Shown in pieces: positions 4,584 to 62,062 of a stretch of DNA of 64,000 nt. The notes beneath the pieces are model-generated. The model worked only from the letters and a program-made list of their open reading frames with translations, was not told the origin of the DNA and searched no databases. The position numbers and the translations under genes were made by a program. Where the stretch lies: the IMG/VR virus record IMGVR_UViG_3300033977_000108, positions 140,634 through 204,633 of that record; one strand, 5' to 3'. How positions within the stretch are numbered: the stretch's first letter is position 1; the number at the start of each line of letters is the position of its first letter.

Positions 4584-4598
4584 AGGTCTCAACCTCGG

Positions 4599-4671
4599 TA
4601 GTCGGGGCCGGATTCGAACCGCCAACGCCTGCCTTTTTAGGACAGTGCTCTATCATTGGAGCTACCCGTCT
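4599..4671 (-). tRNA. tRNA-like gene, anticodon AAA (Phe-like; possibly a pseudo-tRNA)
   Basis: Cloverleaf AGACGGG-TA-GCTC CAATGATA GAGC-A-CTGTC CTAAAAA GGCAG-GCGTT-GGCGG TTCGAAT CCGGC-CCCGACT-A; one mismatch each in the acceptor and T stems; ends ACCG rather than ACCA. Confidence 0.7.
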
Positions 4672-8356: not shown

Positions 8357-9538
8357 CTATTCATCCTCCTCGGGGATGGTATTCAGCATCAAATACCTTA
8401 ACTCTGGGTATTCCATTGCTACGCATGGGGCCTTATAACGACAATAGCGACATTGCCATGCCCCAATTATCTTATGCTTGGCTTCCCATTCTTTGTACTT
8501 TTTGTCGGTGATTAGCCCTTTGCCCTTCAGGTCTTCCACCTTCTCGGCCGTGTATTTGTATTGATATTCAGCCGGAGGCATGTAGCCAGCAGGCAGTTCA
8601 GCTATTTCGAGCCGGACCGCTTCCCAGAAATCAGCACCGGCTTTCTTTGACGCCTCGTCTAAATTGCCTTCATTGTCGGCAACTAATAGTGGGGGCTGTA
8701 CGCCCCTGAGCATCAGCCGTCTCTCAGCCTCATCTATGGCTCTTTGCCAGGCATCCTGTAAAGTCTTGTATCGTTGGTAGATATTCTCAATGGTAAATAC
8801 TTTCCAAGGTATGCCATCTACAGATGGGTAATGTAAACCGTCGGTATCCATGTAAATACCGATGTCAAACTCTCTTCTATTGCGGCCGGTCCGGTCTACA
8901 TAGAGGAGCTTGCCACCTAACTCACCATTGCCCATCAGGTCAAGTTGCGGCTGATACACTTGGATGCGATTCCTATGGCGCGCGGCGGCTTCAGGATTGT
9001 CGCGGGCCTCTTTGGCGCAAATCTCAATCGCGTCTTTCATACGCGCGCCTGTCCGCAGCTCATTCAAATAGACTACGAGTTGCAGCATGTGCTCAAGCTT
9101 TGGTTTGCCCTCTTTCACGATGCGCTTACTGGCAAAATACCCATCAAAGCTTTTGATTTCAGCAATCAATCCTTGCTGTGTATCTTTGTCCAGGAGCACA
9201 CCATCAAGCTCAAATGCCAGCTTTACGTCCTCAACCCAAACTTTTACGCCGGAAGCTACGCAGATGTTGGCGGCTATTGCTTGCTCGAAGACATCCTTTT
9301 CTACCGCCTTGCCTAAACGGACAATTTGACAGCCCGTGGCGTCCATTGGATTGGTGATAGGCTGCCCTGTCATTCTGAGATAACTGGCTCTATGGCACCC
9401 GCCCACAATGTCTGATTCGGTCTGGTCTAATAGGCAAGCGGAAGCTTCTGACGGCCAGACGGCGGGGAGCTGAGAGATACGGGGCTCCCAGTTCTCCATG
9501 GAAAGTAATATTTTGTCTAATTCCTCAAATACGCGCAT
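8357..9538 (-). CDS. Cas4/RecB-like PD-(D/E)XK exonuclease with 4-Cys Fe-S motif
   Basis: GGCHR (Cys1), ELDG, AEIKS, QLVVY (QxxxY), CRYCRYKAPC (3 Cys); extended-10 promoter upstream. Confidence 0.75.
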   Translation of the reverse strand: MRVFEELDKILLSMENWEPRISQLPAVWPSEASACLLDQTESDIVGGCHRASYLRMTGQPITNPMDATGCQIVRLGKAVEKDVFEQAIAANICVASGVKVWVEDVKLAFELDGVLLDKDTQQGLIAEIKSFDGYFASKRIVKEGKPKLEHMLQLVVYLNELRTGARMKDAIEICAKEARDNPEAAARHRNRIQVYQPQLDLMGNGELGGKLLYVDRTGRNRREFDIGIYMDTDGLHYPSVDGIPWKVFTIENIYQRYKTLQDAWQRAIDEAERRLMLRGVQPPLLVADNEGNLDEASKKAGADFWEAVRLEIAELPAGYMPPAEYQYKYTAEKVEDLKGKGLITDKKYKEWEAKHKIIGAWQCRYCRYKAPCVAMEYPELRYLMLNTIPEEDE

Positions 9539-9557
9539 TTGCTAACCTCCATCGCGT

Positions 9558-9566
9558 ATTATACCA
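9558..9566 (-). promoter_or_regulatory. extended -10 promoter
   Basis: TGGTATAAT overlapping the upstream stop codon, followed by GGAGG and the exonuclease ATG. Confidence 0.55.
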
Positions 9567-9831
9567 CATCAGGGCCCCAGCCAAAAGATACATCAGACGG
9601 TCCTTTTGCATGGAACAAGATCTGTTCTATCTCATTTGGGAAGGGCAGATTCATCTGCCTTGCGTGCAGGCAAAACATGAGAAGCCCCCAATCTCTGGGG
9701 CTTGGGGTGGGGCTCATAGTATCCCTAATCGCAGCAATGAGCAGGTCAACCTTGTCCGGCTGCATACGCGGCACTTCGCTGGGGTCAAAGCCAACTACTT
9801 CGGCAGTTTCCTGTAAGTTATCCCAGTCCAT
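9559..9831 (-). CDS. hypothetical protein
   Basis: Start refined to MDWDN. Confidence 0.55.
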   Translation of the reverse strand: MDWDNLQETAEVVGFDPSEVPRMQPDKVDLLIAAIRDTMSPTPSPRDWGLLMFCLHARQMNLPFPNEIEQILFHAKGPSDVSFGWGPDVV

Positions 9832-10051
9832 TTTGTTTCTCCAAGTGTGGCTCCGGCGGCCATTCGACAACATTCAATGTTTGATTACCGCGGGTGACTC
9901 TAAACCTTCCTGAACCATCGCGTAGCAGTTCTATGCGGGCTTCGGTAATCCAAGTATTGGCCTCTACAACAAGTTCTTGACTGGCAAGTCTATGTACGAG
10001 TTTGCGCCTGCGCGAATCGCTTGCGTAGATTCTACCTATGAGGGCTGCCAT
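9818..10051 (-). CDS. hypothetical protein
   Basis: 77-aa ORF coupled to neighbours. Confidence 0.55.
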   Translation of the reverse strand: MAALIGRIYASDSRRRKLVHRLASQELVVEANTWITEARIELLRDGSGRFRVTRGNQTLNVVEWPPEPHLEKQNGLG

Positions 10052-10053
10052 AT

Positions 10054-10401
10054 TTACCAGAACGACTTCGTTTCGCCGGATAAGTAATGGATGTAGCCTT
10101 GAGGACCATTAACGAAGCGGGGGCCCCTTTTATCTAATAGCTGCCCTGGTTGTACTTCCCTACTATACACTTCTGGGGTCTTAGTCCCATCCTCATCGCG
10201 CTGTGGGTGCCATCTGTCGCCGCAGCAGGGGCAGTCTATGCCGCTCTTGCAGCCATAAAAGTATAATCCCAGATCCTCTGCCCGGCAGTTTGCATCGTAG
10301 CTATTTATTGCTTCTATTACGACAAAACATGAGATACCCTTGGCAGAGTCTGTATCGAATTTGCCAAAGCCGTTATTCTGATCGAAACAAAAGAAAGGCA
10401 T
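10054..10401 (-). CDS. conserved phage protein with QNN and DCPCCGDRW motifs
   Basis: FDQNNG...VIEA...AEDLGLYF...DCPCCGDRW, a recurrent phage family. Confidence 0.7.
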   Translation of the reverse strand: MPFFCFDQNNGFGKFDTDSAKGISCFVVIEAINSYDANCRAEDLGLYFYGCKSGIDCPCCGDRWHPQRDEDGTKTPEVYSREVQPGQLLDKRGPRFVNGPQGYIHYLSGETKSFW

Positions 10402-10402
10402 A

Positions 10403-10801
10403 CTAAATCTCCCTACCAATATCCTCACCGGCCTCAACTGCCTTGCCGGAATTTGTAGCCGTAAGGCCAGTAGATTGAAATGTATCCAGGACTTTCTCAG
10501 ACAATAGACATCTCAATGGTAAAACTTGTACTCGTTGTGTGCTGAAATAGGCGCGCTCTGGGGTACCGAGCATGTCCCTGCCCATGCCCACTGGCGTTTC
10601 TTTGCCAAACAAGCTTGTCGTTATAATGAGCAAGGCAGGATATTCCTCATCCACTGAGAGGGGAACGTTGGTATTGAACGGTGTCTTATAACCCCGGAGT
10701 ACGAAAGTAGTCTCGGATTCTGCTGCTACGGCCTGCCTTATTTCTTTGGTCTGTTCCGCATTCTTTGCTACTCTAACACTGACATAAACATCAAGGAGCA
10801 T
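10403..10801 (-). CDS. hypothetical protein
   Basis: 132-aa ORF translationally coupled to the AAA ATPase. Confidence 0.6.
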   Translation of the reverse strand: MLLDVYVSVRVAKNAEQTKEIRQAVAAESETTFVLRGYKTPFNTNVPLSVDEEYPALLIITTSLFGKETPVGMGRDMLGTPERAYFSTQRVQVLPLRCLLSEKVLDTFQSTGLTATNSGKAVEAGEDIGREI

Positions 10802-12882
10802 TAGACCTCCCTATCTGTTTCCAAGATGCCCTGGCTATACATCTCTTGCCGGTGTTTCCGCAGCCCGTTCCTATCTCTACCGCGCTCACGCCACTCCTTT
10901 GGACAATACCCGAAGTGCGTGACATATTCCAGTGCCAGGTCTATCAGAGCTTCTATCAGCTGCGTATTCGGCAGGATATTATCCATTGATAGTTCCCAAT
11001 CAGCGCGTGTGATTTCTGCCGAATCGGCTGCCTTTCTTTGCTCTGTCTTGGATAACTTCTTTATCTCCGGGTCTTCCAAGATGCGAAAGATAGCGTTGTT
11101 TAGGGCGTCTTTTGCTACTACTTCTATGTCGGCGCCGGTCCAAACATGGTCGGCCCAGATTAGGCGGCCTAAACCATGCTCTTTATTCTCCAACTTTGCC
11201 GTCTCTTTCAGATCCTTCGCCCAACGGAGATGATGCTTCTTGGCGATAGCTTGAAGCAGTTCGGCTCTGCCTTCACTATTTACCTCGGAAGGGGGCAGAG
11301 CTGGCAAAACAGCATCGAAGCGACCAGACCGGATTAGAGCGGTGTCCAATACATCTGGTCTGTTTGTGGCACCGATAATCACAATCTTACCTGCCCGGCT
11401 GTCATCGGACAAAAAGGTCATTAGTGAGTTGAATACCCGGGAAGAAGTCCCAGAGTCTCCTATTGAGGTTCGTCCGGCGGAGAGAACAGAATCTAATTCA
11501 TCAAGGAACAGAATGACAGGAGCGGCAGATTCCACAGCCTCCAAGAACTTGCGCGTCTTTGTCTCCGTTTCTCCCACAATGCCGCCGAAGAGCCTGTCAA
11601 GGTGGCCTATCATGAAATTCATTCTGGCTTCTTTGGCTAAGGCATTTGCTAAGAAGGTCTTACCGGTTCCTGGCGGACCGGTCAGGAGCACACCTTTGCT
11701 GCATGACCGCTTGTCGCCCACCATCAAGGGACGGATAATCATCCGCCTGAAGTATAACTTCAACTCTTCGTGGCCGCCTACCAGGTCGAAGCCATGCTCC
11801 GGTTCATAAAACTCAACCAGACCTTGATATTCCTCTTCAATAGCCCGCTGCTTTCGGGCGCGGATGGCCGTGAAATCGACGGGCACATTATCCAGCCAGG
11901 ACTGCATCAGAACATCCTCTAAATGGCATCTTGACATGCCTGCGGATTGGACGGCGAACAGATGCTCATCTACGCCTTCGGCATAGGCCACATCATGGAC
12001 GTTCCTGCTGGCTATTCTTACAGGATGGCCTTCTTTAGAGTATCTTCGGACCATCTCGGTGAAGTTGTGCAGCCATTCTTCACGCTCCTCCAGCTTTGGG
12101 TGCTTCACAAGGATGCTGCTTACTCTTGAAGAGCCTCCACTGATGCTGTCATGAATATCCGTGGAGTGGCGGCTGAGAATGATTATCATGTTCTTATTGC
12201 CAATGGCTTCATCTGCCGCCCAGTTGCGCAGGTGTACTATAGGCAGCCTATCGGTTAGGTTCAGTTGGGACATCTGCCCGTTAGGGAAGATGGCATCCCC
12301 ATCTTTGAATATAATCCTAAAGCATGTCTCAGGTTTCCCGACTTCCCCCTTCTTCCTTGCGGCCTGGTTCTTCTCGTATAGAGCTTTAGACGCGGCGAAC
12401 CACATACTCAGCGTCTTCAAACAAGCCATCAAATCGGGCGGGTGGATAATCAGATTCCACGGTACCATGCTGTCGTCGCTATCCTTTGCCTCATCGGGAT
12501 AGCAGGCAGCCATGATAGTCTCCCAGTCTTTACGGGATTTCTCATGGACAAAAGTCAGCCCCTCATTCAGGCTATAGCAGGCCATTACACGATTGTCGGC
12601 TTGCAGGATTTCTTTCTTTTGAGCGGCTGTAGTGGCTTTCATTAGTCTATAATTTACATCCAGTTTGGTAGCGAGAAGGTCTATAATATGAGATCTACAG
12701 CCGCTATTGTCCTGGTAGTCGTTGATGTTCCCGTGGAGAATAAAGGTATGGGCTATCTTCGCTTTATAGTCGCGGGCTAATTTACGGATGGCTTCCGGCT
12801 CAGGAAACTCATAAGCCTTTGTCTCTTCCACCGCGTCCTCTGATTCGGGCTTTTTGGTCTTATTTTCTTCGTCCGGCATCAT
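10801..12882 (-). CDS. classical-clade AAA+ ATPase (Ycf46/Cdc48-like; degenerate N-terminal domain plus one active AAA domain)
   Basis: GPPGTGKT, LFLDELD, GATNRPDVLDTALIRSGRFD (second region of homology), WTGADIE. Confidence 0.9.
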   Translation of the reverse strand: MMPDEENKTKKPESEDAVEETKAYEFPEPEAIRKLARDYKAKIAHTFILHGNINDYQDNSGCRSHIIDLLATKLDVNYRLMKATTAAQKKEILQADNRVMACYSLNEGLTFVHEKSRKDWETIMAACYPDEAKDSDDSMVPWNLIIHPPDLMACLKTLSMWFAASKALYEKNQAARKKGEVGKPETCFRIIFKDGDAIFPNGQMSQLNLTDRLPIVHLRNWAADEAIGNKNMIIILSRHSTDIHDSISGGSSRVSSILVKHPKLEEREEWLHNFTEMVRRYSKEGHPVRIASRNVHDVAYAEGVDEHLFAVQSAGMSRCHLEDVLMQSWLDNVPVDFTAIRARKQRAIEEEYQGLVEFYEPEHGFDLVGGHEELKLYFRRMIIRPLMVGDKRSCSKGVLLTGPPGTGKTFLANALAKEARMNFMIGHLDRLFGGIVGETETKTRKFLEAVESAAPVILFLDELDSVLSAGRTSIGDSGTSSRVFNSLMTFLSDDSRAGKIVIIGATNRPDVLDTALIRSGRFDAVLPALPPSEVNSEGRAELLQAIAKKHHLRWAKDLKETAKLENKEHGLGRLIWADHVWTGADIEVVAKDALNNAIFRILEDPEIKKLSKTEQRKAADSAEITRADWELSMDNILPNTQLIEALIDLALEYVTHFGYCPKEWRERGRDRNGLRKHRQEMYSQGILETDREV

Positions 12883-51858: not shown

Positions 51859-52058
51859 GGATCACCCGATAATGGCTATCTCAACGGCGTCTGCCGACTC
51901 TCCCATCTCTGGGTATGTTTCCCAATAGTGCCCGCAGCTGAATTCTGCATCCATTATCTTTATTTCGCCCTTGAAATCGTAGGGAAGACCCTCATTCATC
52001 CTGGCAACGATTGTTCCAGGAGGCAGGGTTCGTAATAGGACTATTAGTTCTTCGGCTG

Positions 52059-52844
52059 TCATTGCTCCTCCTCTGCATTGCTCCATGGCCCTCTGGGCCA
52101 GGGCAGCTGGGCTGGAATCATCTCGGTCAGATTGCTACGCTCCTCCACGAATGGGAAAGCGGGTCGAACCAGCCATTCGCCTTTGTATGTACAAAGCCTG
52201 CCGAATCTATGTTTTACGGGAATGTTCTCCCACTGCACACCTACTGTTGCAAGGTCCTCCAGCCTCTGCTTGTTGTTCCTCTTGTCCAGCTGGCGTGGAG
52301 AAAAGTGGACCTCTGCCATCATGTTGATGGCATTACGCACCCAGTCCCTCTGGCGCCAGATAAAGTAGTTCTCCACTTCTATCCGATGTGGGATAACAAA
52401 GGCGCGCGCATCGAATGTAGCGCGTGGCTGGAATTTATAGCTCTCCAGCCCTGGCGCTGGGTTTTCGTCGGCTAAGTAGTTGATATGGTTGTTGAAAGCT
52501 GATGTGAAGTGCGAGGCAGCTACCGACACGATTTTCTGCAGGTTGCCATCAAACCAAGCCTGGGTGCCAGGCTGCTCGAAATCTGTCAGTAGCACCGATA
52601 CTTCGTCGCTCTGCAAGTATGCAAACTTGCAGCCTTGTATCTCCTTACATAAGCAGCAGGTAGCGTAAGCAAAAGCACTCTCCAAATCCTCATCAAATGG
52701 CCTGCTGGCCTTTCTGGTATAGAGGTGGAAGGCCTTGCCGTCTACTCGTATGATTGTATAGGTACTGCGGGGAAGATAGATACGATATCTATCCTCATAG
52801 TAGCCCTTCATACGGGCAGCAAGAGCGTTCTTGGCTTCGCTCAT
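52059..52844 (-). CDS. tRNA(His) guanylyltransferase / Thg1-like 3'-5' polymerase
   Basis: RMK.YE, IRVDGKAFH, QSDEVS, FDG..QK..S..AS, FDAR, YFIWRQ.D..RN. Confidence 0.92.
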   Translation of the reverse strand: MSEAKNALAARMKGYYEDRYRIYLPRSTYTIIRVDGKAFHLYTRKASRPFDEDLESAFAYATCCLCKEIQGCKFAYLQSDEVSVLLTDFEQPGTQAWFDGNLQKIVSVAASHFTSAFNNHINYLADENPAPGLESYKFQPRATFDARAFVIPHRIEVENYFIWRQRDWVRNAINMMAEVHFSPRQLDKRNNKQRLEDLATVGVQWENIPVKHRFGRLCTYKGEWLVRPAFPFVEERSNLTEMIPAQLPWPRGPWSNAEEEQ

Positions 52845-53096
52845 GCCTTCTTCCCATACTGCTTGATCAGGGCCCTCTGCTTCTCTATATTGCCCTCGAT
52901 CTTATCGAGTACCAAAATGGCACACACCACACAGTCCTGCAAGGTGGCACCTGGTCTGGCTGCGCTAGTATCTATAGCTGCATTCAACGCGGCTTTGTAT
53001 AGCTGGTCTTCGTCCACAGGTGTGGAATCATTCTCGCTCATTGAATATCTTTCTCAGGAATGCCTTTTCCTTGGAAATCTTCTCGTGGGCTCCCGG

Positions 53097-53471
53097 TCAA
53101 TCCTCGATCTCAAACAGGGTGTCGATGATGCCTCCGAGTGAGAAGTTCTTCCCTGTTCTCAGGCTTTCCACATCAAGCACGTCACCTTCAAGAGCTTCCA
53201 GAAAGGCTGTGTTCCTCTTGATTCGATTCACGGCTTCGCCCCACTGGTAGCGGATACACGGCCGGTATGCACACTCTATACGTGGCCTCTTGTCGAACTC
53301 TTCCCATGTGTTTATAGTGCGCATTTGTTTCTGGAGGGCGGCCAGATACTTCACGTAGTTGGCCTTGTAGGTCTTGAATAGCTTGTCATAGTCTGCCTTC
53401 TCCTTCACCAGCTTGTCAAGTGCACGCTGCAGCCGGGCTCTCAATACAGATTTCTTCACTTCCATAGTCAA
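53097..53471 (-). CDS. hypothetical coiled-coil protein
   Basis: 124-aa ORF with AAGGAG RBS. Confidence 0.55.
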   Translation of the reverse strand: MTMEVKKSVLRARLQRALDKLVKEKADYDKLFKTYKANYVKYLAALQKQMRTINTWEEFDKRPRIECAYRPCIRYQWGEAVNRIKRNTAFLEALEGDVLDVESLRTGKNFSLGGIIDTLFEIED

Positions 53472-53585
53472 TCTCCTTCCTCGCGGAAGATCTTCCTCAG
53501 CAGGGTCTCCTCCCTGCTCAGCTTCTCACGTATCTTCCGGCGCTTATCACCGATGACACGAGTCCCGGGAGGAGCGCCGTGCATT

Positions 53586-53879
53586 CTAGCTCGCCGCTTG
53601 ACTTCCTTGATTGGGTTCAGTACTTTGCGTTTCTTTGACATGGCAGGCTATCTCCTTTCTTCCTACTTGTATAGCCCGGGCCAGCCTATAGTTGCCATCG
53701 TGGATGATGTACTGGCCATCCCGAAGCTCTACAAACAGAGGCCTGTAATCCCGCCTTGGATGCCGCTGGATGTAGTCTGCCATGCCAGCCATTTCTATTG
53801 CTCTTGGGGCTGGCAAGTCGGATATTCTGATCATCTGGATCGGACACTTCTCAAACTCATTGTTGACCAAGGTGTTCAC
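53586..53879 (-). CDS. ParB/sulfiredoxin N-terminal-like domain protein
   Basis: PLFV...YIIHDGNYRL..A...G...I pattern. Confidence 0.55.
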   Translation of the reverse strand: MNTLVNNEFEKCPIQMIRISDLPAPRAIEMAGMADYIQRHPRRDYRPLFVELRDGQYIIHDGNYRLARAIQVGRKEIACHVKETQSTEPNQGSQAAS

Positions 53880-54052
53880 GATGTTCCTCCAAGAAGAAAT
53901 GCTCAGCGTACTCGCCGGTGATCTTGCGCAACTGGGAAAGCTGTAGGGCTATCTCCCACAAGGCCCTTACCTTGGCGGCTTCCGCGGTCCTGGACATAGG
54001 CATTGTGCTGTTAAAGGCGTCCATAAGTGAATCCTGCTCGCTTCTTATCTGG

Positions 54053-55156
54053 TCAGGCTCCATCATCGTCCTCCAGAGTGCCAGCCTTGAACTTTAGGCT
54101 GCTATAGTAATCGGCGTGGTCAACGTCATCCCTTGGCCCCTTATAGATAGCCTGGAACAGGGAGCCATTGGGATAGGCGTACAAGTATTTTACATCAATT
54201 AACTGTTGCTTGTAGGGCATCTCCCAGTTAGGTGGGATGGTTACCTTGCCTACCTCCCTGAACATCCCGCCTTTGTCCAGCAGGATACCGAGAAGAACAC
54301 TTCGCTTGTCCTTGGTAGTGTCTAACACCTGGCAAGTGGCTTCGCCGTAAAACTTGAACTTGCGCATTGTCCCGCCACTGTTCGGCTTGCCTGCCTGGTA
54401 GGTTGCCTCTTTCTTCTTGAATACCAGTCCCTCTCCACGGCGCGCCTTTATCTCATTGAAAAGACTGCGCTTCTCTGCTGTTGTGTATGCTGTGTAAACT
54501 TCTTTTAGGTGTTCATCAAACCGTACGGCCAGCTCGGCGAGCATAGATAGGCGAAATACGGTTGACAGGCCAGTAAGATTATGTGTCCCAGCATATATGA
54601 GGTCAAATACATTCAGCACTGTGCCAATGGCTTCGCCGTCTAAGATAACCGGCACAGGGAGGGCTGCTATCGCGTCGCGTATTTCGGATGGGAAGCCCAC
54701 CACTATGCCTTTCTTATTGCTGGCAGTGATTTGGCCGCCCACGGAGCTAATCATCAGGTGCCTGCCATCAAACTTCTCCTGGGCGAGCCAGTTATCGTTT
54801 TTTATGTAGGTTTTAACTTCTTCCTCTTCAAGCATGGTCGGCTGCCAAGGTATAAGCCCGGAGGATTCCTTCTCGCCCGCCGCCACAACAGCGGCTTGGC
54901 TTGCCCCTTCACCAGGCTTATAACCCTTGGCTACTTTGGAGCCGACCAGCTTATTGTATACCTTCTTGGCTTGCTCGTATGTGGCGTTGGCTATCTTTAC
55001 GCCTGGTTGTAGGGTGCTTCCCCGTCTGCCGAACTCGAAGCTCACCCTCCAGCGCAGATTATCCAGGCCGTTTCCTTTATCTTCCAGCAAGTGTGCCAGG
55101 TAGACTTTATCACTGCTACCCTGTTTGAAGTAGAGACTTATTGATTCTTCCTTCAT
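54053..55156 (-). CDS. WGR domain-ATP-dependent DNA ligase fusion
   Basis: N-terminal SDKVY...FGRRG...K..KGY (WGR-like); EKFDG (motif I), LDGE, FDL, EGLVFK, KFK; C-terminal OB-like segment. Confidence 0.85.
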   Translation of the reverse strand: MKEESISLYFKQGSSDKVYLAHLLEDKGNGLDNLRWRVSFEFGRRGSTLQPGVKIANATYEQAKKVYNKLVGSKVAKGYKPGEGASQAAVVAAGEKESSGLIPWQPTMLEEEEVKTYIKNDNWLAQEKFDGRHLMISSVGGQITASNKKGIVVGFPSEIRDAIAALPVPVILDGEAIGTVLNVFDLIYAGTHNLTGLSTVFRLSMLAELAVRFDEHLKEVYTAYTTAEKRSLFNEIKARRGEGLVFKKKEATYQAGKPNSGGTMRKFKFYGEATCQVLDTTKDKRSVLLGILLDKGGMFREVGKVTIPPNWEMPYKQQLIDVKYLYAYPNGSLFQAIYKGPRDDVDHADYYSSLKFKAGTLEDDDGA

Positions 55157-55185
55157 TCATTGCCTCCTTAAGCACCAGCTACCTC

Positions 55186-55416
55186 CTATTCCAAGTAGCT
55201 CCCCGTCATCCCTGGCGGGGGTCCCCAGACTAGCGCACTATCAACTTCGGCGCCTGTTACCCTATCAAATTCCCACGCACTGCAGATAATCAGGGCGTCG
55301 GTTATCTTGGTCACTGTCAGGCGGTGCGGTATCTCGCCCCCAAGCCATCGTATGACAGTATCCCCTACCTGGGCTTCTCTGAATGAGACCACCTTTTCAT
55401 TCTTTTCTTTACCCAA
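55186..55416 (-). CDS. small hypothetical protein
   Basis: VGDTVIRWL...FDRVTGAEVD. Confidence 0.5.
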   Translation of the reverse strand: MGKEKNEKVVSFREAQVGDTVIRWLGGEIPHRLTVTKITDALIICSAWEFDRVTGAEVDSALVWGPPPGMTGSYLE

Positions 55417-55897
55417 TGAAAAAGTCTCCCAGTTAATTTAGGCGTTCCCGGCCTCGCGTCCGAGATGCGTCTCGCAATTGTACGACACGACATTTCTTGC
55501 CCTCAGCTGTAACCGTAGGTGCGTCGCTAGCCTTCAAGGATAGCTTATTGTGCCATGTCGTAGCCAGCAAGTACTCATCACAGTATGGACAGTGTATGTC
55601 AAACATTACAAATGGTATAGCCTTTTCCGTTTCATTCTTCTTTTTCTTCTTCATCTGGTCTCCTTTCCAATGTACTACTGTGGAGTTGGCTATCTATACG
55701 CCTGATTGCAGGGTGCTTCCAGCCCATAGCGGCATCCATGTTCAGTCGCCAGGTGTGGAAGGCATAGACATAATGCCAGAAGTCCATTATTGCCTGCCGT
55801 TCTATAGGGCGTTTCATCGCCAGCAGCGTGGAGAACATACCACGCTCGGCTACCAGGGATTGCTGTAATGCTATTAGATACAGCTGTGTTGCTGTTT

Positions 55898-57178
55898 TCA
55901 TGCGCCCCCTTTGTTTGGTATCCATGGCGGTACAAACTCTTCTGCCTTTATACCTGTCATTCTGGAAATGAATGACAAGTAGTGCTCTCTAAAGGTAGTT
56001 GCGCTGATATCAAAGGTTGCCCACGCAACAGGCTCAGCGCGCATCATAGCATCGGTTATAGCCCTCCCTACCAGCGGAAGAGGAATGTCTGCCTCCTCAT
56101 AGCTCAGGCAGATTTTGGCGGTGCCGATTAGACTTTCTATTCTATCCAGGTGGGTTACCACTAGACGGTTTATCTTCCCTGCCGCGCGTAGGGCATAGTC
56201 CAGCAGCAGCATGTCCAAATGCCCAACCCTAAACCTGCCCTGCCACTCATTGGTTGTATTATGGGCGTCTTTCAGCATTGTGGCCATGCCCCAGGACTCC
56301 GTTGGGAATGGTCCTGGGCCATGCCTGGTAAGATAGCCCCGAATAATGCCAATATAGTCGGCAGAATCGGCATAGGGGCCGAGCAGCTTGACAGCATTGG
56401 CTACTGTAGTATCAGACCAGCTGCAATAGGGATGGAATCCGTATTTCTCGTCCAGCAGTACGCCTTGGGCACCTTCAAATACAAACGTATCGTCGTGCCT
56501 GTAGCCAGTACAGAGTTTCTCCTTAAACCAGCTCTCGTCTACAATGTTCAGCGTTTTGCCCATCTCAGTATAGACAGCCAGGTCTCTCTTCAAAATGTCG
56601 GCAGCGGTCCACTGCCAATAGGAGTAAGGGCCACTGTCGAATTCGAGCATTTGGTTTCTCTTTACTTCGCTGATTTCGTTTAGCTTGTCTTTCATTACGG
56701 CTGGATGCTGCAAGTCGCCAGCATAGAAAACAGTCCTGCCAAAAAGGAGGTCTGACTTTACTTCGCCGATACCCATACCACAGCTCCCGTGTCTTCCTAC
56801 TTTGCGGCTGTTCTCTCTGGTCCTATTCAGCATCTTATGAAGGGTCGTCGTAATAGGGGCGTTCTTGTCTATATACAGGCGCTTATAGGCATCGGTTACT
56901 CCCAGCTCTTGTAAATGGGCCTCCTCGTTCCGCATAGAGAGAGGGTCTATAACCATGAACTGGGAGAGGTATGTCCCCACGCCTGGGACCAGTGTGCCAC
57001 TGCCAAATTGACTGAAGGTATGGTGCTTACCATCAGCCGTAATCACATTATGCCCTGCTTGGCAGCCTCCGTTGTATCGTATGACGAGGGGTACCTTGCG
57101 CGTGCGGCACAGATAGTCTACATACGCGCCCTTCCCTTCGTCCCCAAATCCTAAGCCTACGACACAAATTGGGTTCAT
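55898..57178 (-). CDS. purA: adenylosuccinate synthetase-like protein (divergent PurA clade)
   Basis: GFGDEGKG, GG.QAGHN, GSCGMGIG, FEGAQG.LLD, TRHGPGPFPTE, RVGHLD, LVVTHLD. Confidence 0.85.
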   Translation of the reverse strand: MNPICVVGLGFGDEGKGAYVDYLCRTRKVPLVIRYNGGCQAGHNVITADGKHHTFSQFGSGTLVPGVGTYLSQFMVIDPLSMRNEEAHLQELGVTDAYKRLYIDKNAPITTTLHKMLNRTRENSRKVGRHGSCGMGIGEVKSDLLFGRTVFYAGDLQHPAVMKDKLNEISEVKRNQMLEFDSGPYSYWQWTAADILKRDLAVYTEMGKTLNIVDESWFKEKLCTGYRHDDTFVFEGAQGVLLDEKYGFHPYCSWSDTTVANAVKLLGPYADSADYIGIIRGYLTRHGPGPFPTESWGMATMLKDAHNTTNEWQGRFRVGHLDMLLLDYALRAAGKINRLVVTHLDRIESLIGTAKICLSYEEADIPLPLVGRAITDAMMRAEPVAWATFDISATTFREHYLSFISRMTGIKAEEFVPPWIPNKGGA

Positions 57179-57193
57179 AGCATTTGATTTGTC

Positions 57194-58156
57194 TTATATC
57201 ACCCTGTCCAGATTCTCGCCTGCGTTAAGAGCCGTGGAATCAATAAAAGTAGAAAGGGAATCTGCCAACATGTTAGTATCAGCATCTTCTACACCAAGTT
57301 CCACCAGTGTTCCTTTTATCTGCGCTTTATTTATCTTGCCCTCCCTGGCGCCTACAACAACGCCTACCATGGAGCAGATGTCTTTGCCGTCGCGCAGGGT
57401 GATAACATGGTCGGCGCCAAATAGTTCTATGCCGCGCTCACGCGATTGTTGTTCGCCGCCGTCAAGAGGCCAGAGCTGATAGACGTCCCATAGCTTCTGG
57501 GCTTTCTTGACAAGGGTTTCTATCTTCTCACTCTTCTCTGTTTGGTCGCCGAACACATCTACAAGCTGGGTGCCCACTGTCCGGTCCGGGAACATCTCGT
57601 CTGCGTACAGGAAGAGCAGACCTTTCTTGTGGCGCTTCTCAAAGCAATCCAAGACAGTCTTGTAGGCGGCGCAATAGAGAGGAAGGTCGTAGGATTCCCT
57701 GTTGTTGCCTCCACCTTTGCCGACCAGTTTGATGTCTCGGAGCCACTCGTCAATGCGATCGTCGGACTCAAAGTCCGATGCTTGGAAAGCCCGGTTGCCT
57801 ACCACCAAATAGTCATCGTTAGCCCAGATGGCAACCTGCGGGTTAGGAATGTGCTTGGCAAGCAAATCCATCAGCTTTGGCAGGGCTTTTTGAGCCACTC
57901 GGGCATTGTTTATGTTGCTGCCCGTGACATCCAAGCAGATGACAATAGCCAGAGATTCAGGATGGTCCTTGCTATCCCTGCTCTCCAGCTTCTTGAATGG
58001 CTTCTTATTGATGCGGCTCGGCAAAAGAGCCTCGTGTATGTCTCGCAAATCGCCGAAGTTGAAGTCTTTATCATGCTGAAAGTCATCAAAGCCTTGGGTA
58101 GCTCGCAGATTTGATTTATAATAAACTACATCACTACTCCATTTTCCGTATCCCAT
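57194..58156 (-). CDS. von Willebrand factor A (vWA) domain protein
   Basis: MGYGKWS...ESRDS.DHPES.AI...LDVTGS (MIDAS-like DxTGS), GGGGN-like KGGGN..ESY, ADE. Confidence 0.75.
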   Translation of the reverse strand: MGYGKWSSDVVYYKSNLRATQGFDDFQHDKDFNFGDLRDIHEALLPSRINKKPFKKLESRDSKDHPESLAIVICLDVTGSNINNARVAQKALPKLMDLLAKHIPNPQVAIWANDDYLVVGNRAFQASDFESDDRIDEWLRDIKLVGKGGGNNRESYDLPLYCAAYKTVLDCFEKRHKKGLLFLYADEMFPDRTVGTQLVDVFGDQTEKSEKIETLVKKAQKLWDVYQLWPLDGGEQQSRERGIELFGADHVITLRDGKDICSMVGVVVGAREGKINKAQIKGTLVELGVEDADTNMLADSLSTFIDSTALNAGENLDRVI

Positions 58157-58203
58157 AATTTGCTCCTCCTTAGAGCGGTTCTTCTACTACTTTCATCATT
58201 GGT

Positions 58204-58593
58204 TTAGTGTCTGTGGTCATGGTGTTCGTCCTCGCCAGCTCCATTGAGGTCCTCTTTCTCGTGGTCTCCCTCAAGTAGAATGTGTGAGGATACAACATAC
58301 ATCATGGATTCTTGTTGCTGGTAGAATCTCCTCGTGAAGGACAGGACAACCTTGGCGGTGTCCTCGTCGGCTATGAATCTCACTGGTATTACCTGCTCCT
58401 TCTGTACTGGCCGGTGTCCCCCTGGCACCCAGCTGCCCCTGGCCGGCCGCATTACGGTCAAGCCCTTGGAGAGGCCTGCTACTTCCCTGTCCCAGGCTTT
58501 ATGGTAGCTTAGGGGCACTTTCTTCCCGTTGTTGTAGTAGGACGGGACAAGTATTTCCCATAGGATTAGGCCGCCGGAAACTTTCATTATCAT
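58204..58593 (-). CDS. conserved phage hypothetical protein
   Basis: WEILVP...H..WD..V...GLT...P..G.W...E..IPVR...FY.Q. Confidence 0.65.
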   Translation of the reverse strand: MIMKVSGGLILWEILVPSYYNNGKKVPLSYHKAWDREVAGLSKGLTVMRPARGSWVPGGHRPVQKEQVIPVRFIADEDTAKVVLSFTRRFYQQQESMMYVVSSHILLEGDHEKEDLNGAGEDEHHDHRH

Positions 58594-59186
58594 CCCAGCA
58601 CCTCGTCAATAAGCCCGAATTCCTTGGCTTCCTTGGGACCCAGCCAGCGTTCCCGGCGCCGAAAGAATTCAAGCACCTCTCCCTTTGACTTTCCGGTGCG
58701 GCTGGCCAATATGTCTATCACCAGTTCCTGTAATGTCTTCATCTCGGCCGTGGTATCCTCAAGGTCGGATTCCTTTTGCTGCTCCATTATCGTCCATTTG
58801 CTCAATTCATGCAGGTGTAGGCGAGAATGCTTGCACGCCTGCCGCCAAGTACAGCCCTGCAACACAATCATGGCCGCGGCGGAGGCAGCAAAGCCTTCTA
58901 CTATGCCCTTGACTTCGGTGAGGTTAGCTACCTCTCGGATTAGGTCGTACATGGCAAGACTATGATGGACGCCGCCGCCCGGACTGGAAATATGTATCTG
59001 GATTGGTGCTATCCCCAGGCCATGCACCAGGTTAAGGCTGCGGCTTATTTCTAATAGAACACATTCGTCTATGTCGTCATATAGTCTGATATGACCATTG
59101 GTAATGTCATTGGCAGCAGCCAGGTCATAGATGTCCCGATAGATCAGGTCCTTAGCCGCCTTACGCAGGTCTTCAATGTTCATCAT
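58590..59186 (-). CDS. clpP: ClpP-like serine protease
   Basis: ISSPGG, AASAA (catalytic Ser), LHLHE (His), RERWLGPKEAKEFGLIDEV; start refined past the tRNA. Confidence 0.88.
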   Translation of the reverse strand: MMNIEDLRKAAKDLIYRDIYDLAAANDITNGHIRLYDDIDECVLLEISRSLNLVHGLGIAPIQIHISSPGGGVHHSLAMYDLIREVANLTEVKGIVEGFAASAAAMIVLQGCTWRQACKHSRLHLHELSKWTIMEQQKESDLEDTTAEMKTLQELVIDILASRTGKSKGEVLEFFRRRERWLGPKEAKEFGLIDEVLG

Positions 59187-59197
59187 TCTCCTTAGAT

Positions 59198-59274
59198 TGG
59201 TCGGGGCGCCCAGACTTGAACCGGGGACCTCTTGCGCCCAAGGCAAGCGCGCTACCAGGCTGCGCCACGCCCCG
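59198..59274 (-). tRNA. tRNA-Pro(TGG)
   Basis: CGGGGCG..GCGCAGCCTGGTAGCGC..CTTGC CTTGGGC GCAAG..CCCGG TTCAAGT CTGGG CGCCCCG ACCA; canonical with encoded CCA. Confidence 0.97.
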
Positions 59275-59285
59275 TCCAGCATTCT

Positions 59286-59294
59286 ATTATAGCA
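59286..59294 (-). promoter_or_regulatory. extended -10 promoter for tRNA-Pro/clpP
   Basis: TGCTATAAT 11 nt upstream of the tRNA 5' end, overlapping a stop codon. Confidence 0.55.
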
Positions 59295-59580
59295 CCCTCT
59301 CCGCCGACAGGCGGGCAGGACTGTTGTCTTCTGGTATCTCCGGAGCAGACGCCTCAGCCAGGGATGCCTCTGTAACTCGGGTAGGTATGTTGACTATGTA
59401 CCAGCCTGTTTCCAGGTAGATAGGCAGATGGTTTTCGCAGGCATAAACGCTTACCCGATATTTGCTGAAAGCTACCCAGGTAAGTTTGCCTTTATGTTCC
59501 TTCGTCTCCCAGTCGCATACACACCGGTCCTCCTTGGGCTTCTGTATTATCTCTGCCGTATCTACTGCTGGCAGTGCCAT
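59287..59580 (-). CDS. small Zn-binding hypothetical protein
   Basis: CVC...CENH. Confidence 0.55.
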   Translation of the reverse strand: MALPAVDTAEIIQKPKEDRCVCDWETKEHKGKLTWVAFSKYRVSVYACENHLPIYLETGWYIVNIPTRVTEASLAEASAPEIPEDNSPARLSAERVL

Positions 59581-59582
59581 AG

Positions 59583-59795
59583 TTAGACCTCGGTGTCAAG
59601 GTACTTATCGTAAATCCAGCCGATAAAATCAGCGTACAGGATATCCATTCCCTGATAATTATCAGGGTCTGAGGCATCCAGATTGAGGTTCTTACACCGT
59701 TCGCTGCCCAAGTACTCACCAACCAGCAGCGTAAGTGCAGCGCCCTTGTCAATCCGTGTAGTCTTATCTGCCTCGGCGGTTTTTCCCATGGTCAT
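59583..59795 (-). CDS. small hypothetical protein (paralog of 61383-61604)
   Basis: EYLG.E.CK...LY.D...IY. Confidence 0.55.
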   Translation of the reverse strand: MTMGKTAEADKTTRIDKGAALTLLVGEYLGSERCKNLNLDASDPDNYQGMDILYADFIGWIYDKYLDTEV

Positions 59796-60017
59796 CTCCT
59801 TTCCTGATTAGCATTTTTCTTGTCGTTCTCTCCGTCTCCTGCAGTCTTCGCTCCAGGTCGCTCGATGGATGCCTTCGCCTTCTTCCTTGCTCGGTGCTTT
59901 GCAATGTAGTGATGGGCAACGTTGATCCCAATAGTTACTACCGTACCTCCGGCTATGCTCCAGGCCGTCGTTTTCCAGGTAGGCTGCGGGGTAGCTGCCA
60001 AGGCTATGGCAAGCATG
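59792..60017 (-). CDS. putative membrane protein
   Basis: Hydrophobic segment AWSIAGGTVVTIGINVA followed by a basic tail; start uncertain. Confidence 0.45.
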
Positions 60018-60647
60018 CTACTTGCCAACCACGGCTGCCCGTTGCGCACGTTTCTCCTTCCGATAAATAGCCCTACACATCTTCATGGAGGGCTCGATCA
60101 AATAGAAGTTGTCCCAGTTGCACACATCAATACACAGGAAGTTGCTCCAGTGCTCCAGGATCTTCTCCCATACCCGCCTGCGCTCTGCCCATTCCCTGGG
60201 CGAGGCTTTCGGGTCCGGATCAGTATTGTTCCAGTACCCATAGTACCGGAGCTTTGGGTGCCGCTTCAAGAAGCCGAACACTTTCTCAATCACAGGGTAT
60301 TCCCCATATGGAATGATATAATATCTGGATCCTAGCCTCCGGATGGCAAGGGAGGCGCTGAAATCGAAGGAGTTGCGATCGAACTTACCCAGCTGCGCTT
60401 TGTATTGCTCGCGTGCGTAATTGTGCGCCAAGTGCATGCGAATACGCTCGTCGCTGATGCCTGGGTCGGACTTTCGGTACCTCTCTACCTCCTTGGGATC
60501 CATCTTCACATGGGGCATAATGCTCCGGTACACATCCTCCAGGTATTTAGACATCTCCCCCCGGGCCTTCAGCTTCAGCTCGTAAGCCAGGGCGAAGATA
60601 TCATGTACGTGCTGCGTTCGATAGGCAGTGTAAATCTTAGTGCTCAT
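60018..60647 (-). CDS. hypothetical protein
   Basis: MSTKIY...Y.Y.NNTD.D...EW..RRRVW phage-type pattern. Confidence 0.65.
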   Translation of the reverse strand: MSTKIYTAYRTQHVHDIFALAYELKLKARGEMSKYLEDVYRSIMPHVKMDPKEVERYRKSDPGISDERIRMHLAHNYAREQYKAQLGKFDRNSFDFSASLAIRRLGSRYYIIPYGEYPVIEKVFGFLKRHPKLRYYGYWNNTDPDPKASPREWAERRRVWEKILEHWSNFLCIDVCNWDNFYLIEPSMKMCRAIYRKEKRAQRAAVVGK

Positions 60648-61376
60648 TCAGTTATTCCTCCCCGCGGCCCAGAGCCATGTGTAGGCAACCCGGCACTTGC
60701 CGTGGGCGCCGACTTCGAATACCCTAACTCCTTCTGCACTAACAGCAACCAGCTCGGAGGGGATATCCGTCCAGCAGCCTACATTGTAATATACACCATC
60801 TTTGTGGGCGTGATACATGTGTGTATGCCCACACAGAATGCTGTCTTTGCCCTTTTCCTTGCAATAGGCGAGGGCACCATCCATCACTTCCTTGTCCAGT
60901 TTCAGCCACTTCTTGCTGACGCGCTTGATAAACCGGCTTGGCCGATGGGCTTTCGTATCCAGCAGCTGTAATGTATAGTAGATGGCGCATGCCATGTTGG
61001 TGGTATGTAGGTGCTTCTTGATGAAGCTGTCGAATTGGTGGCCGTGCAGGGCGATGTACTTCTTGCCGCCAATCTCCCATTCGAACTCGTCCACCAACTC
61101 AATGCCTAACAGATGGGCCACCACTTCTGCCACCTCGTCATCGTCGTGATTGCCTATCGTCCATACTACCCTCTTGTGGCCGGCTACCTTTCCTAAGTAG
61201 GACAGCAGCTTCCAATCATCCTTGCGCAGCCTGGTCGGGTGGTCGTCGAATAGGTCCCCAACAATAAGCAGGGTTTCATACTCCCATTCATGCAGGACTT
61301 CTACCAGCACCTTCGCCCGGTTGACTGGAGAACCCAGGTGGATGTCAGCTATGCTGAGGGTATGTGTTCTGAACAT
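60648..61376 (-). CDS. calcineurin-like metallophosphoesterase (LpxH-like family)
   Basis: ADIHLG, VGDLFD, GNHD, HGHQFD, CGHTH. Confidence 0.88.
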   Translation of the reverse strand: MFRTHTLSIADIHLGSPVNRAKVLVEVLHEWEYETLLIVGDLFDDHPTRLRKDDWKLLSYLGKVAGHKRVVWTIGNHDDDEVAEVVAHLLGIELVDEFEWEIGGKKYIALHGHQFDSFIKKHLHTTNMACAIYYTLQLLDTKAHRPSRFIKRVSKKWLKLDKEVMDGALAYCKEKGKDSILCGHTHMYHAHKDGVYYNVGCWTDIPSELVAVSAEGVRVFEVGAHGKCRVAYTWLWAAGRNN

Positions 61377-61382
61377 GTTATG

Positions 61383-61604
61383 CTACCAGGGTGTGGGAAT
61401 GAGTTTGTAGGTCCTGTAGATGTAGCAAACAAGGTCGTAGTAGAGGACGGCTTTATCCCCGGTCTTCATGTCAACCGCCTTGCATTGGTCTGTCCCCAAG
61501 TATTCGCTGAACAGTTCTGCCAACAAGATGCCTTTATCTACGGGCGGCGCTGCAGATTGCTCGGTCTCGGTGACGAACCCCGACTCTTTAGCTGTCTTTC
61601 CCAT
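61383..61604 (-). CDS. small hypothetical protein (paralog of 59583-59795)
   Basis: EYLGTDQCK...LYYDL..YIY. Confidence 0.55.
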   Translation of the reverse strand: MGKTAKESGFVTETEQSAAPPVDKGILLAELFSEYLGTDQCKAVDMKTGDKAVLYYDLVCYIYRTYKLIPTPW

Positions 61605-61612
61605 GGTTCCTC

Positions 61613-62062
61613 CTAATCAGTGATCTCAATTAGCGGGCAGATCTTCTTGTGCTTTGCCTTGATCCAGGCCTTTACCAGTGTCAAGAACTTGGAGGGCGGC
61701 TTCTTAGGCTTCGGCAGATCACACCAACGAGCAATCCCAAATGCCATGGTAAATGTTCCCACAATGCACAAAGCTACGCTAGCCGTGACCCCTAGCGCCG
61801 CCCAAAAGGCCCTAGTACCGCTGAATAGCCCAATCGTTGCCAGGAAACTGGCGTACACTAGGAGCCAGCTCACCACCCTACGGGATATGCTGTCCCCTAA
61901 GAAAGCCCATCGTGGGAGGGCCCAGAACAAGACCACTCTCATGTATGGGCATAGGTTGACTACTTTTACATCTTCGGGGCAGCGGTGGTAGCCATTCTTG
62001 GTCTTGCTCTTGAACCAGGCAAGGTATACTTTCCAATGCCAGGATTTCTTACTGATTGTCAT
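61613..62062 (-). CDS. membrane protein (about 2 transmembrane helices)
   Basis: Long hydrophobic stretches flanked by basic residues. Confidence 0.65.
   Translation of the reverse strand: MTISKKSWHWKVYLAWFKSKTKNGYHRCPEDVKVVNLCPYMRVVLFWALPRWAFLGDSISRRVVSWLLVYASFLATIGLFSGTRAFWAALGVTASVALCIVGTFTMAFGIARWCDLPKPKKPPSKFLTLVKAWIKAKHKKICPLIEITD

Follow-up and report, generated by a model that had tools for sequence, protein, structure and literature searches.

A copy of the purine enzyme PurA directly following a von Willebrand factor A (vWA)-type gene in a phage genome raises the question of whether the enzyme still makes adenylosuccinate or joins a different amine to a purine nucleotide. The locus was analyzed in a stretch of 64,000 nucleotides (the window), positions 140,634 to 204,633 of IMG/VR record IMGVR_UViG_3300033977_000108, a complete phage genome of 204.6 kb. 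The initial annotation, made from the sequence alone, described a PurA variant that keeps the GTP/IMP core but has a rebuilt amino acid-binding loop and GSC in place of the IMP-contacting GTT, adjacent to and co-oriented with a vWA gene.

Organization of the locus

This observation was confirmed. Both open reading frames are present and co-oriented, 15 nt apart, and all the motifs ascribed to the PurA-like protein are found in its translation. The features of the locus, given in window coordinates, are as follows.

55898..57178 (-), PurA-like ligase gene, 426 amino acids (aa)
57128..57145 (-), P-loop GDEGKG (residues 12-17) holding the Asp13 and Lys16 equivalents
57050..57061 (-), Q40-A-G-H43, with Asn38 replaced by Gln and the E. 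coli His41 equivalent (His43) kept
56780..56788 (-), G131-S132-C133 in place of the IMP 5'-phosphate motif G-T128-T129
56462..56476 (-), EGAQG (residues 235-239) with the Gln224 equivalent
56321..56323 (-), His286 at the position of E. coli Val273, next to the ribose C2'
56228..56263 (-), rebuilt loop HNTTNEWQGRFR (residues 306-317) in place of the aspartate loop G-A-T-T-G-R-R-R-R
56144..56155 (-), T-H-L-D (residues 342-345), the guanine-specificity motif (E. coli T-K331-L-D333)
57179..57193 (-), 15-nt spacer between the vWA stop and the PurA-like start, with no evident Shine-Dalgarno sequence
57194..58156 (-), vWA-fold partner gene, 320 aa
58139..58156 (-), conserved N terminus M-G-Y-G-K-W of the vWA protein
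57953..57985 (-), family-specific motif E58-S-R-D-x3-H65-P-x-S68 just before strand 1 of the vWA fold
57917..57931 (-), MIDAS-like D76-V-T-G-S80
57596..57607 (-), Y-A-D186-E187, the MIDAS-like aspartate after strand 4

The motif GPFPTE (residues 289-294) is also present in the PurA-like protein. No promoter or terminator signal above that in shuffled sequences was found in 55000-59600, and the two genes are probably co-transcribed. A megablast search with 24 kb of the window against isolated phages returned no close relative; Rfam, read data and the large representative protein set were not searched. The other neighbors in the window, namely ligase, Thg1-like, ClpP-like and phosphoesterase genes and small ORFs, showed no linkage to the cassette in 160 loci, and an RNA-repair reading based on them was rejected.

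The PurA-like protein and its clade

The PurA assignment is solid, with a match to Pfam PF00709 (E value 1.2e-65), an AF2 model with pLDDT 91, and a TM score of 0.82 to E. coli adenylosuccinate synthetase (AdSS, PDB 1cg1). The best solved relative is E. coli PurA (E value 7e-37). The protein nevertheless scores below all NCBIfam PurA equivalog cut-offs (NF002223, 184.3 bits against 402; TIGR00184, 156.9 bits against 395.55). In the phylogeny, which the initial annotation had asked for, it is monophyletic with 110 other vWA-linked paralogues against canonical PurA, with a support of 100. Five bacterial genomes each hold a canonical PurA (566-617 bits) plus a member of this clade (182-201 bits).

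Residue conservation was analyzed in 111 clade sequences of about 30-48% identity. The catalytic and GTP residues are retained, Asp13 and Lys16 each in 110/111 and His41, Gln224 and Asp333 in 111/111, while Lys331 is His, Cys or Asn. In contrast, the aspartate loop is replaced by a different conserved set: T301 is W/F/Y in 102/111, G302 is Q in 109, R303 is G in 88, R305 is F in 99, and R306 is kept in 111. At the positions of Thr300/Thr301, Arg303 and Arg305, the window protein has E311, W312, G314 and F316, whereas six canonical PurAs keep T, R and R. The alignment of the loop is ambiguous by one gap, but under the alternative alignment with an insertion the R303 and T300/T301 equivalents are still not conserved. 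R303 contacts both the aspartate and the IMP 2'-oxygen, and the Thr-rich loop tip touching aspartate is conserved even in PurZ (PMC8342488).

The nucleotide pocket is changed as well. Of the IMP 5'-phosphate contacts, Asn38 is Gln in 111/111, T129 is Cys in 93, Val in 15 and Thr in 3, and Arg143 is most commonly His, Tyr or Phe; T128 is Ser in 94. Val273, whose role next to the ribose is given in PMC8342488, is His in 111/111. The window protein lacks the usual C-terminal S-x-G-P guanine motif. The pocket geometry was not inspected in the models.

Comparison with PurZ

PurZ and PurZ0, the succino-amino-deoxyadenylate synthases of Z-genome phages (PDB 6fm1, 7odx and 7vf6), are likewise a phage-borne offshoot of the PurA superfamily with altered substrate choice, and, like PurZ, this clade has lost the Arg303 contact to the ribose 2'-oxygen. 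The best PHROG of the window protein, phrog_1211, is named 2-aminooxy adenylosuccinate synthetase, and RefSeq uses the same label for the Bixzunavirus homologues. However, Asp13 is kept, whereas all 147 phage PurZ sequences have Ser at this position (PMC12884076). PurZ structures matched only with an E value of about 1e-4 and a TM score of about 0.6, and the NCBIfam PurZ score is 51.5 bits against a cut-off of 300. PurZ keeps the aspartate-binding loop, derives from archaeal short PurA and travels with DatZ/MazZ/DpoZ or DutZ/DmtZ, while this clade has lost the loop, derives from the long bacterial type and travels with a vWA protein. Neither DatZ (PF12917) nor MazG (PF03819) was found in the complete genome; DUF550, Dut-like and NDT-like genes were not sought. 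PurB is also absent from the genome.

The vWA-fold partner

No sequence profile recognizes the partner as a vWA protein: no Pfam, NCBIfam or PADLOC hit was obtained, none of 562 homologues has a Pfam domain, and a profile of 66 members found no PDB vWA chain by sequence. It matched phrog_2971 (E value 5e-29), of unknown function. The fold was confirmed on the AF2 model (pLDDT 91.8), with a Foldseek probability of 1.00 to integrin I, vWF-A and Ku80 vWA domains and a VIA-align Z score of 15.8 (rmsd 3.0 over 193 residues) to an integrin beta I-like domain, covering residues 66-273.

In 66 family members D76, G79, S80, D186 and E187 are invariant and T78 is at least 90% conserved. The MIDAS-like motif D76-x-T78-x-S80 lies at the end of strand 69-76, and D186 follows strand 179-184, as expected for a metal site. 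The middle Thr equivalent was not assigned and metal binding was not assayed, so the presence of a genuine MIDAS stays undecided. In known vWA proteins, such sites bind an acidic group of a protein or peptide ligand. In comparison to vWA or integrin I-like domains such as integrin beta I-like, Ku80 vWA, NorD/CbbO and BatB, the protein has a 65-residue N-terminal extension and a helical C-terminal extension, and its partner is a PurA-fold enzyme, with no AAA+ (MoxR-type) partner. Within the N-terminal extension E58, S59, D61, H65 and S68 are invariant in the 66 sequences. At the N terminus, Gly2 is present in 154/154 loci, position 4 is G/S/T, position 6 is aromatic (W in 132), and the start codon is ATG in 151/154.

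Conservation of the gene pair and its genomic context

Lack of a conserved vWA linkage had been set in advance as a finding that would count against the proposed function, and the linkage proved to be strong. Among 160 independent loci fetched with the vWA family, 150 hold a PurA-like gene in the flank (77/80 viral and 73/80 bacterial), which is far beyond chance. In 149 of the 150 it is on the same strand and downstream, and in 108 the gap is under 400 nt. Of the ten loci without it, five are cut short, and five have ample flank. The genes are adjacent in Mycobacterium phage Tonenili, Rhizobium phage RHph_TM39, Vibrio phage phiTY18, Actinomadura and Ktedonosporobacter. In the isolated-phage collection, both genes were found in 200-201 Mycobacterium, 10 Rhizobium and 6 Vibrio phage records.

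A J-domain kinase-like gene lies in 95 loci, upstream in 87. Its product is a likely pseudokinase with the HRD Asp replaced by Ala. NrtR-like Nudix-WHD genes with a degenerate Nudix box lie in 40/80 bacterial and 7/80 viral loci. NAMPT lies in 11 loci, in some of them between the vWA and PurA-like genes, and NadE or NadE-NMNAT genes lie directly upstream of the vWA gene in several loci. In Rhizobium phage RHph_TM39, NMNAT/Nudix and PRTase genes lie upstream. In 69/80 viral loci, no NAD genes were seen in the flank.

The phage studied here carries only the minimal pair. The J-domain kinase was not found in its genome by tblastn or with a profile of 91 members, and neither were NrtR, NAMPT and NadE by tblastn, nor NUDIX, NAPRTase/NAMPT and NMNAT by family searches. 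In PADLOC neither the PurA-like nor the vWA protein matched a defense model; only the J-domain kinase-like partner from bacterial loci hit kinase models weakly.

Physical association of the two proteins was not shown. The complex prediction, a check that the initial annotation had proposed, gave an ipSAE of 0.00 in two runs, which counts neither for nor against binding. Covariation between the vWA N-terminal residues and the PurA-like pocket residues over 103 pairs gave no clean pattern and was uninformative.

Interpretation

The interpretation in the initial annotation, a GTP-dependent ligase with a different amine donor, perhaps a peptide or protein presented by the vWA partner, and a candidate new nucleotide- or protein-modification system carried by a phage, was partly supported. 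Retention of the catalytic and GTP machinery without the aspartate loop holds for the whole clade, the vWA linkage is conserved across unrelated phages and bacteria, and the pairing is unrelated to housekeeping purine synthesis. Nothing shows that the amine donor is a peptide or protein, and the system is not specific to phages, as the vWA family lies in at least 334 stretches of bacterial species genomes. The remodeled IMP 5'-phosphate and ribose contacts, the frequent J-domain pseudokinase and the tie of bacterial loci to NrtR-like regulators and NAD genes had been missed.

The best explanation, which we hold to be about as likely as not, is that the gene encodes a catalytically competent member of a distinct PurA paralogue clade, a GTP-dependent purine-C6 ligase. 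Like AdSS, it most likely binds GTP and a 6-oxopurine nucleotide and phosphorylates the C6 oxygen, and would then couple the activated C6 to an amine that is not L-aspartate, since the threonines and arginines that hold aspartate in both PurA and PurZ are replaced by a conserved aromatic-Gln-Gly-x-Phe-Arg loop. With the 5'-phosphate and 2'-ribose contacts also changed, the nucleotide may not be plain IMP either. In this view the enzyme works as a fixed cassette with the upstream vWA protein, which may bind or present the second substrate through its MIDAS-like site or may itself be the acceptor. Many relatives add the J-domain pseudokinase upstream, and in bacteria the cassette often sits beside NrtR-like regulators and NAD salvage or synthesis genes; the physiological setting of the module is therefore probably NAD/ADP-ribose-linked nucleotide metabolism or conflict. 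The folds, the residue replacements, the paralogue status and the gene linkage rest on direct analysis, whereas all of the chemistry is inferred from residue conservation, no substrate or product having been identified, and the role of the vWA protein is inferred only. The roles of several E. coli residues (N38, T129, R143, T300/T301, R305 and K331/D333) are those given in the AdSS literature and were not derived from the analysis here. In the literature searched no paper on this clade or on such a nucleotide-amine ligation was found, and recent PurZ papers sort phage PF00709 proteins only into PurZ and PurA.

Of the alternatives, a role in NAD/ADP-ribose metabolism or counter-defense survives best, although it is unlikely. 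The enzyme would act on a hypoxanthine- or other 6-oxopurine-bearing nucleotide larger than IMP, such as a dinucleotide or a diphosphoribose derivative, and help rebuild or alter the adenylate/NAD pool when NAD is broken down. The NrtR-like (ADP-ribose-sensing type) regulators and the NAD salvage or synthesis genes are consistent with this, as is the change of all three residues that hold a free 5'-phosphate (N38, T129 and R143). However, this phage has no NAD genes among those searched, so the NAD context may not apply here, no known NAD intermediate needs this chemistry, and NAD genes are common in large phages anyway. Large phages carry the module as they carry genes of the NAD reconstitution pathways (NARP1-3), but none of the NARP enzymes (Adps, Namat, NadV, NMNAT, PnuC and NadR) is a PurA or vWA homologue.

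A more specific possibility, also unlikely but not excluded, is that the amine is the free alpha-amino group of the N-terminal glycine of the vWA protein, exposed after removal of Met1, invariant in 154/154 family members and followed by small residues and an aromatic anchor. The product would be a protein carrying a nucleotide linked through adenine N6, a kind of protein-nucleotide bond that we found described in no paper. Loss of the side-chain and carboxylate contacts for aspartate is what one would expect if a glycyl peptide replaced the free amino acid.

It is very unlikely that the protein is an ordinary AdSS, carried as an auxiliary metabolic gene to boost AMP synthesis from IMP and aspartate beside an unrelated vWA gene. 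The full PurA fold (PDB 1ade/1cg1), the intact catalytic core and the database naming of clade members as adenylosuccinate synthetase speak for it, and the first half-reaction is probably the same. The replaced aspartate and IMP contacts, the sub-threshold equivalog scores, the canonical purA kept beside it in bacteria and the vWA linkage speak against it; PurB is lacking in the phage, though that of the host could serve. Adenylosuccinate formation and complementation of a purA deletion were not assayed. Similarly doubtful is a non-catalytic GTP-binding switch or scaffold regulating the vWA and J-domain partners, which the heavily remodeled pockets, the pseudokinase partner and the missing S-x-G-P motif would allow: residues needed only for chemistry on the purine (Asp13, His41 and Gln224) are retained over 111 diverged sequences, and the replaced positions are themselves strongly conserved, as expected for a new specific pocket. 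A PurZ or PurZ0 enzyme making the precursor of 2-aminoadenine is effectively refuted by the evidence given above.

PurA has had one known neofunctionalized branch in phages, PurZ, and that branch revealed a new DNA base pathway. The clade described here is a second, larger branch in which the catalytic core is kept while the aspartate and nucleotide pockets are rebuilt. Besides the cultured mycobacteriophages (Bixzunavirus) and the Rhizobium and Vibrio phages, it is present in at least 238 stretches of IMG/VR viral contigs and in bacteria, including soil bacteria, and its current database labels, PurA or PurZ, both failed the tests applied. Phages of M. smegmatis and strains of Actinomadura, Nocardia and Streptomyces that carry it are in culture, which makes the system easy to test. 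Its product would likely be a new N6-substituted purine nucleotide or a nucleotide-protein conjugate, and could also explain a widespread module that neighbors NAD/ADP-ribose regulators.

Organization of the gene pair

The virus record is complete at 204,633 bp and carries direct terminal repeats, with the window forming its last 64 kb. Two genes on the minus strand make up the cassette.

57194-58156 (-), 320-aa protein with a predicted vWA fold
55898-57178 (-), 426-aa PurA-like protein, beginning 15 bases after the stop of the preceding gene

The downstream protein matched Pfam Adenylsucc_synt at E 1.2e-65, and its AlphaFold2 model (pLDDT 91) superposed on E. coli adenylosuccinate synthetase at TM 0.82. 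No Shine-Dalgarno is evident before its start. The upstream protein had no match in Pfam, NCBIfam or PADLOC and only an unnamed PHROG, but its model (pLDDT 91.8) was a vWA domain over residues 66-273, with Foldseek probability 1.00 to integrin I, vWF-A and Ku80 domains and Z 15.8, rmsd 3.0 over 193 residues, to an integrin beta I-like domain. It carries D76-x-T78-x-S80 after strand 1 and D186 after strand 4; among 66 relatives, D76, S80 and D186 are invariant and T78 is at least 90% conserved. Every motif that the initial annotation had read in the two proteins is present, and its observation is confirmed.

The surroundings of the cassette and other features of the window were as follows.

52059-52844 (-) and 54053-55156 (-), a Thg1-like tRNA-His guanylyltransferase (PF04446, phrog_4717) and an ATP-dependent ligase with a weak RNA-ligase match, 1-3 kb downstream of the cassette
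60648-61376 (-) and 58590-59282 (-), a calcineurin-like metallophosphoesterase and a ClpP-family protease (PHROG: head maturation protease), upstream of the cassette
58204-58593 and 60018-60647, proteins of 129 aa and 209 aa between these, with no family match
59198-59274 (-), tRNA-Pro (TGG) called by ARAGORN
4597-4671 (-), predicted tRNA-Phe with the unusual anticodon AAA instead of GAA

The Thg1-like protein and the ligase may be an RNA-repair pair, but the window's own neighbors of the cassette, including the ligase, Thg1-like and ClpP-like genes, were not linked to it in 160 other loci. The tRNA-Pro overlaps the first ~28 codons of the ClpP-like ORF as listed (58590-59282). The protease gene probably starts at a later Met and the N-terminal stretch of the listed ORF is the tRNA read as protein. 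In the part examined (52000-62000), the genes with family matches all lie on the minus strand, and across the whole window the plus strand has a steady negative AT skew (about -0.08 to -0.23) and negative GC skew.

The PurA-like protein is neither PurZ nor canonical PurA

The PHROG and RefSeq name "2-aminooxy adenylosuccinate synthetase" suggests PurZ, but the protein failed the tests for it. PurZ is defined by Ser in place of Asp13 in all 147 phage sequences (PMC12884076), whereas this protein has GDEGKG. Solved PurZ and PurZ0 chains matched at E about 1e-4 and TM about 0.6, compared to 7e-37 and 0.82 for E. coli PurA, and the NCBIfam PurZ model gave 51.5 bits against a cut-off of 300. No DatZ-type or MazG-type gene was found in the complete genome. 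The same name is given in RefSeq to the protein of Mycobacterium phage Tonenili (4977-6305 in the fetched locus) and of other Bixzunavirus records, a PurZ-type label inherited from phrog_1211; these proteins keep Asp13 and belong to the vWA-linked clade, so the label is probably wrong for more than 200 phage records.

The protein scored 184 bits against the PurA equivalog cut-off of 402. Its nearest relatives (40-49% identity) are bacterial proteins named adenylosuccinate synthetase in Actinomadura, Spirillospora, Ktedonobacteria and Chloroflexota. Each of five bacterial genomes tested holds two PF00709 genes, a canonical one (566-617 bits) and one of this type (182-201 bits). In a tree of 111 such proteins and six canonical PurAs, the clade forms one side of a branch with 100 support, within which viral and bacterial members interleave with at least seven switches.

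The 111 clade members were mapped onto E. coli numbering. Asp13 and Lys16 are kept in 110 of 111, and His41, Gln224, Asp333 and Arg306 in 111. In contrast, Asn38 is Gln in 111, Thr129 is Cys in 93 and Val in 15, Arg143 is mostly His, Tyr or Phe, Val273 is His in 111, Thr301 is Trp, Phe or Tyr in 102, Gly302 is Gln in 109, Arg303 is Gly in 88, and Arg305 is Phe in 99. The six canonical sequences keep the E. coli residues at all of these positions. Arg303 contacts both the aspartate and the 2'-oxygen of IMP, the Val lies next to C2', and the Thr-rich loop tip touching aspartate is conserved even in PurZ, which still uses aspartate (PMC8342488). The roles of N38, T129, R143, T300/301, R305, K331 and D333 are those seen in the E. 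coli structures. The loop can also be aligned with an insertion instead (TT-NEWQ-GRFR), but even then the Arg303 and Thr equivalents are not conserved in the clade.

Linkage to the vWA family

The vWA family has 562 relatives in the word search, none with a Pfam domain. A vWA-like gene directly precedes the PurA-like gene in Mycobacterium phage Tonenili, Rhizobium phage RHph_TM39, Vibrio phage phiTY18, Actinomadura madurae and a Ktedonosporobacter. In the isolated-phage collection, the two genes occur in matching sets of records: Mycobacterium 201 and 200, Rhizobium 10 and 10, and Vibrio 6 and 6.

A search with the vWA alignment matched 238 viral and 334 bacterial stretches, of which 80 each were kept. 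A PurA-like gene was found in the flank of 77 viral and 73 bacterial loci; in 149 of these 150 it is on the same strand and downstream, and in 108 the gap is under 400 nt. Five of the ten misses are loci cut short, and for one other, a Gemmataceae genome, the paralogue lies elsewhere in the genome. Absence of a conserved vWA linkage had been set in advance by the initial annotation as an outcome that would count against its proposal, and the linkage proved to be conserved.

Over 154 loci, position 2 of the vWA protein is always Gly, position 4 is Gly, Ser or Thr, position 6 is aromatic (Trp in 132), and position 11 is Tyr in 136, with an ATG start codon in 151. Such constancy at an N-terminus, in a family only 30-50% identical, suggests a functional N-terminal glycine. 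Many family members also end in a short conserved tail of the form G-x-G ... A-(A/D)-R-L after a variable linker (alignment columns 380-408), while the window protein ends in NLDRVI; the tail may be a docking motif.

Additional genes at the loci

A 340-400-aa protein with a J-domain (HPD motif) and a kinase-like domain lies upstream of the vWA gene in 87 loci and downstream in 8. Its HRD aspartate is Ala in the consensus, so it is probably a pseudokinase. NrtR-like Nudix plus winged-helix proteins with a degenerate Nudix box lie in 40 of 80 bacterial and 7 of 80 viral loci, and NAMPT and NadE or NadE-NMNAT genes occur in others, sometimes between or directly before the two core genes. Neither the J-domain protein nor any of these NrtR-like, NAMPT or NadE-type genes was found in searches of this phage.

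Further genes were seen at single loci or mostly within one genus. In the Actinomadura madurae locus, a 654-aa protein with no Pfam, NCBIfam or PADLOC match (9347-11311) directly follows the PurA-like gene, and it was not found in the other 160 loci. On a 78-kb phage-like contig (locus L006) that holds the J-domain, vWA and PurA-like trio, a gene with the Pfam Acb5 domain (10441-10680) lies about 1 kb downstream of the PurA-like gene. An ABC-F type double ATPase (529 aa) recurs about 3-5 kb upstream of the vWA gene in 17 bacterial loci (L125, L128, L131 and 14 others), nearly all Nocardia, which may only reflect synteny within the genus.

Interpretation of the cassette

The folds, residue patterns, paralogue status, gene order and its conservation rest directly on the analysis, while the mechanism is inferred from them. 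The inference is that the first half-reaction is kept, with binding of GTP and a 6-oxopurine nucleotide and GTP-dependent activation of the purine C6 oxygen as in PurA, and that the amine pocket and part of the nucleotide pocket serve something else, the nucleophile being other than aspartate. It is likewise inferred that the vWA protein is needed, as presenter, regulator or acceptor, and that the setting is NAD/ADP-ribose-linked. Prediction of the complex of the two proteins returned no answer and is not evidence either way. The constancy of the vWA N-terminus prompts a further hypothesis, unproven, in which the glycine amine would be the acceptor of the ligase.

Full-text literature searches found no paper on this clade or on the gene pair. 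Two recent PurZ studies divide phage PF00709 proteins into PurZ and PurA only; in one of them, by our arithmetic, 365 of 767 sequences fall in neither named group and are not discussed in the main text. A survey of viral NAD/ADP-ribose systems mentions neither PurA nor this pairing.

The initial annotation had proposed a phage-carried GTP-dependent ligase with a different amine donor, perhaps a peptide or protein presented by the vWA partner, and this interpretation is partly supported. The idea of a different amine and the linkage hold, but a protein substrate and a role confined to phages are not shown. The pair is a real, conserved and apparently uncharacterized cassette, in which a variant within the PurA superfamily is coupled to a new vWA family.
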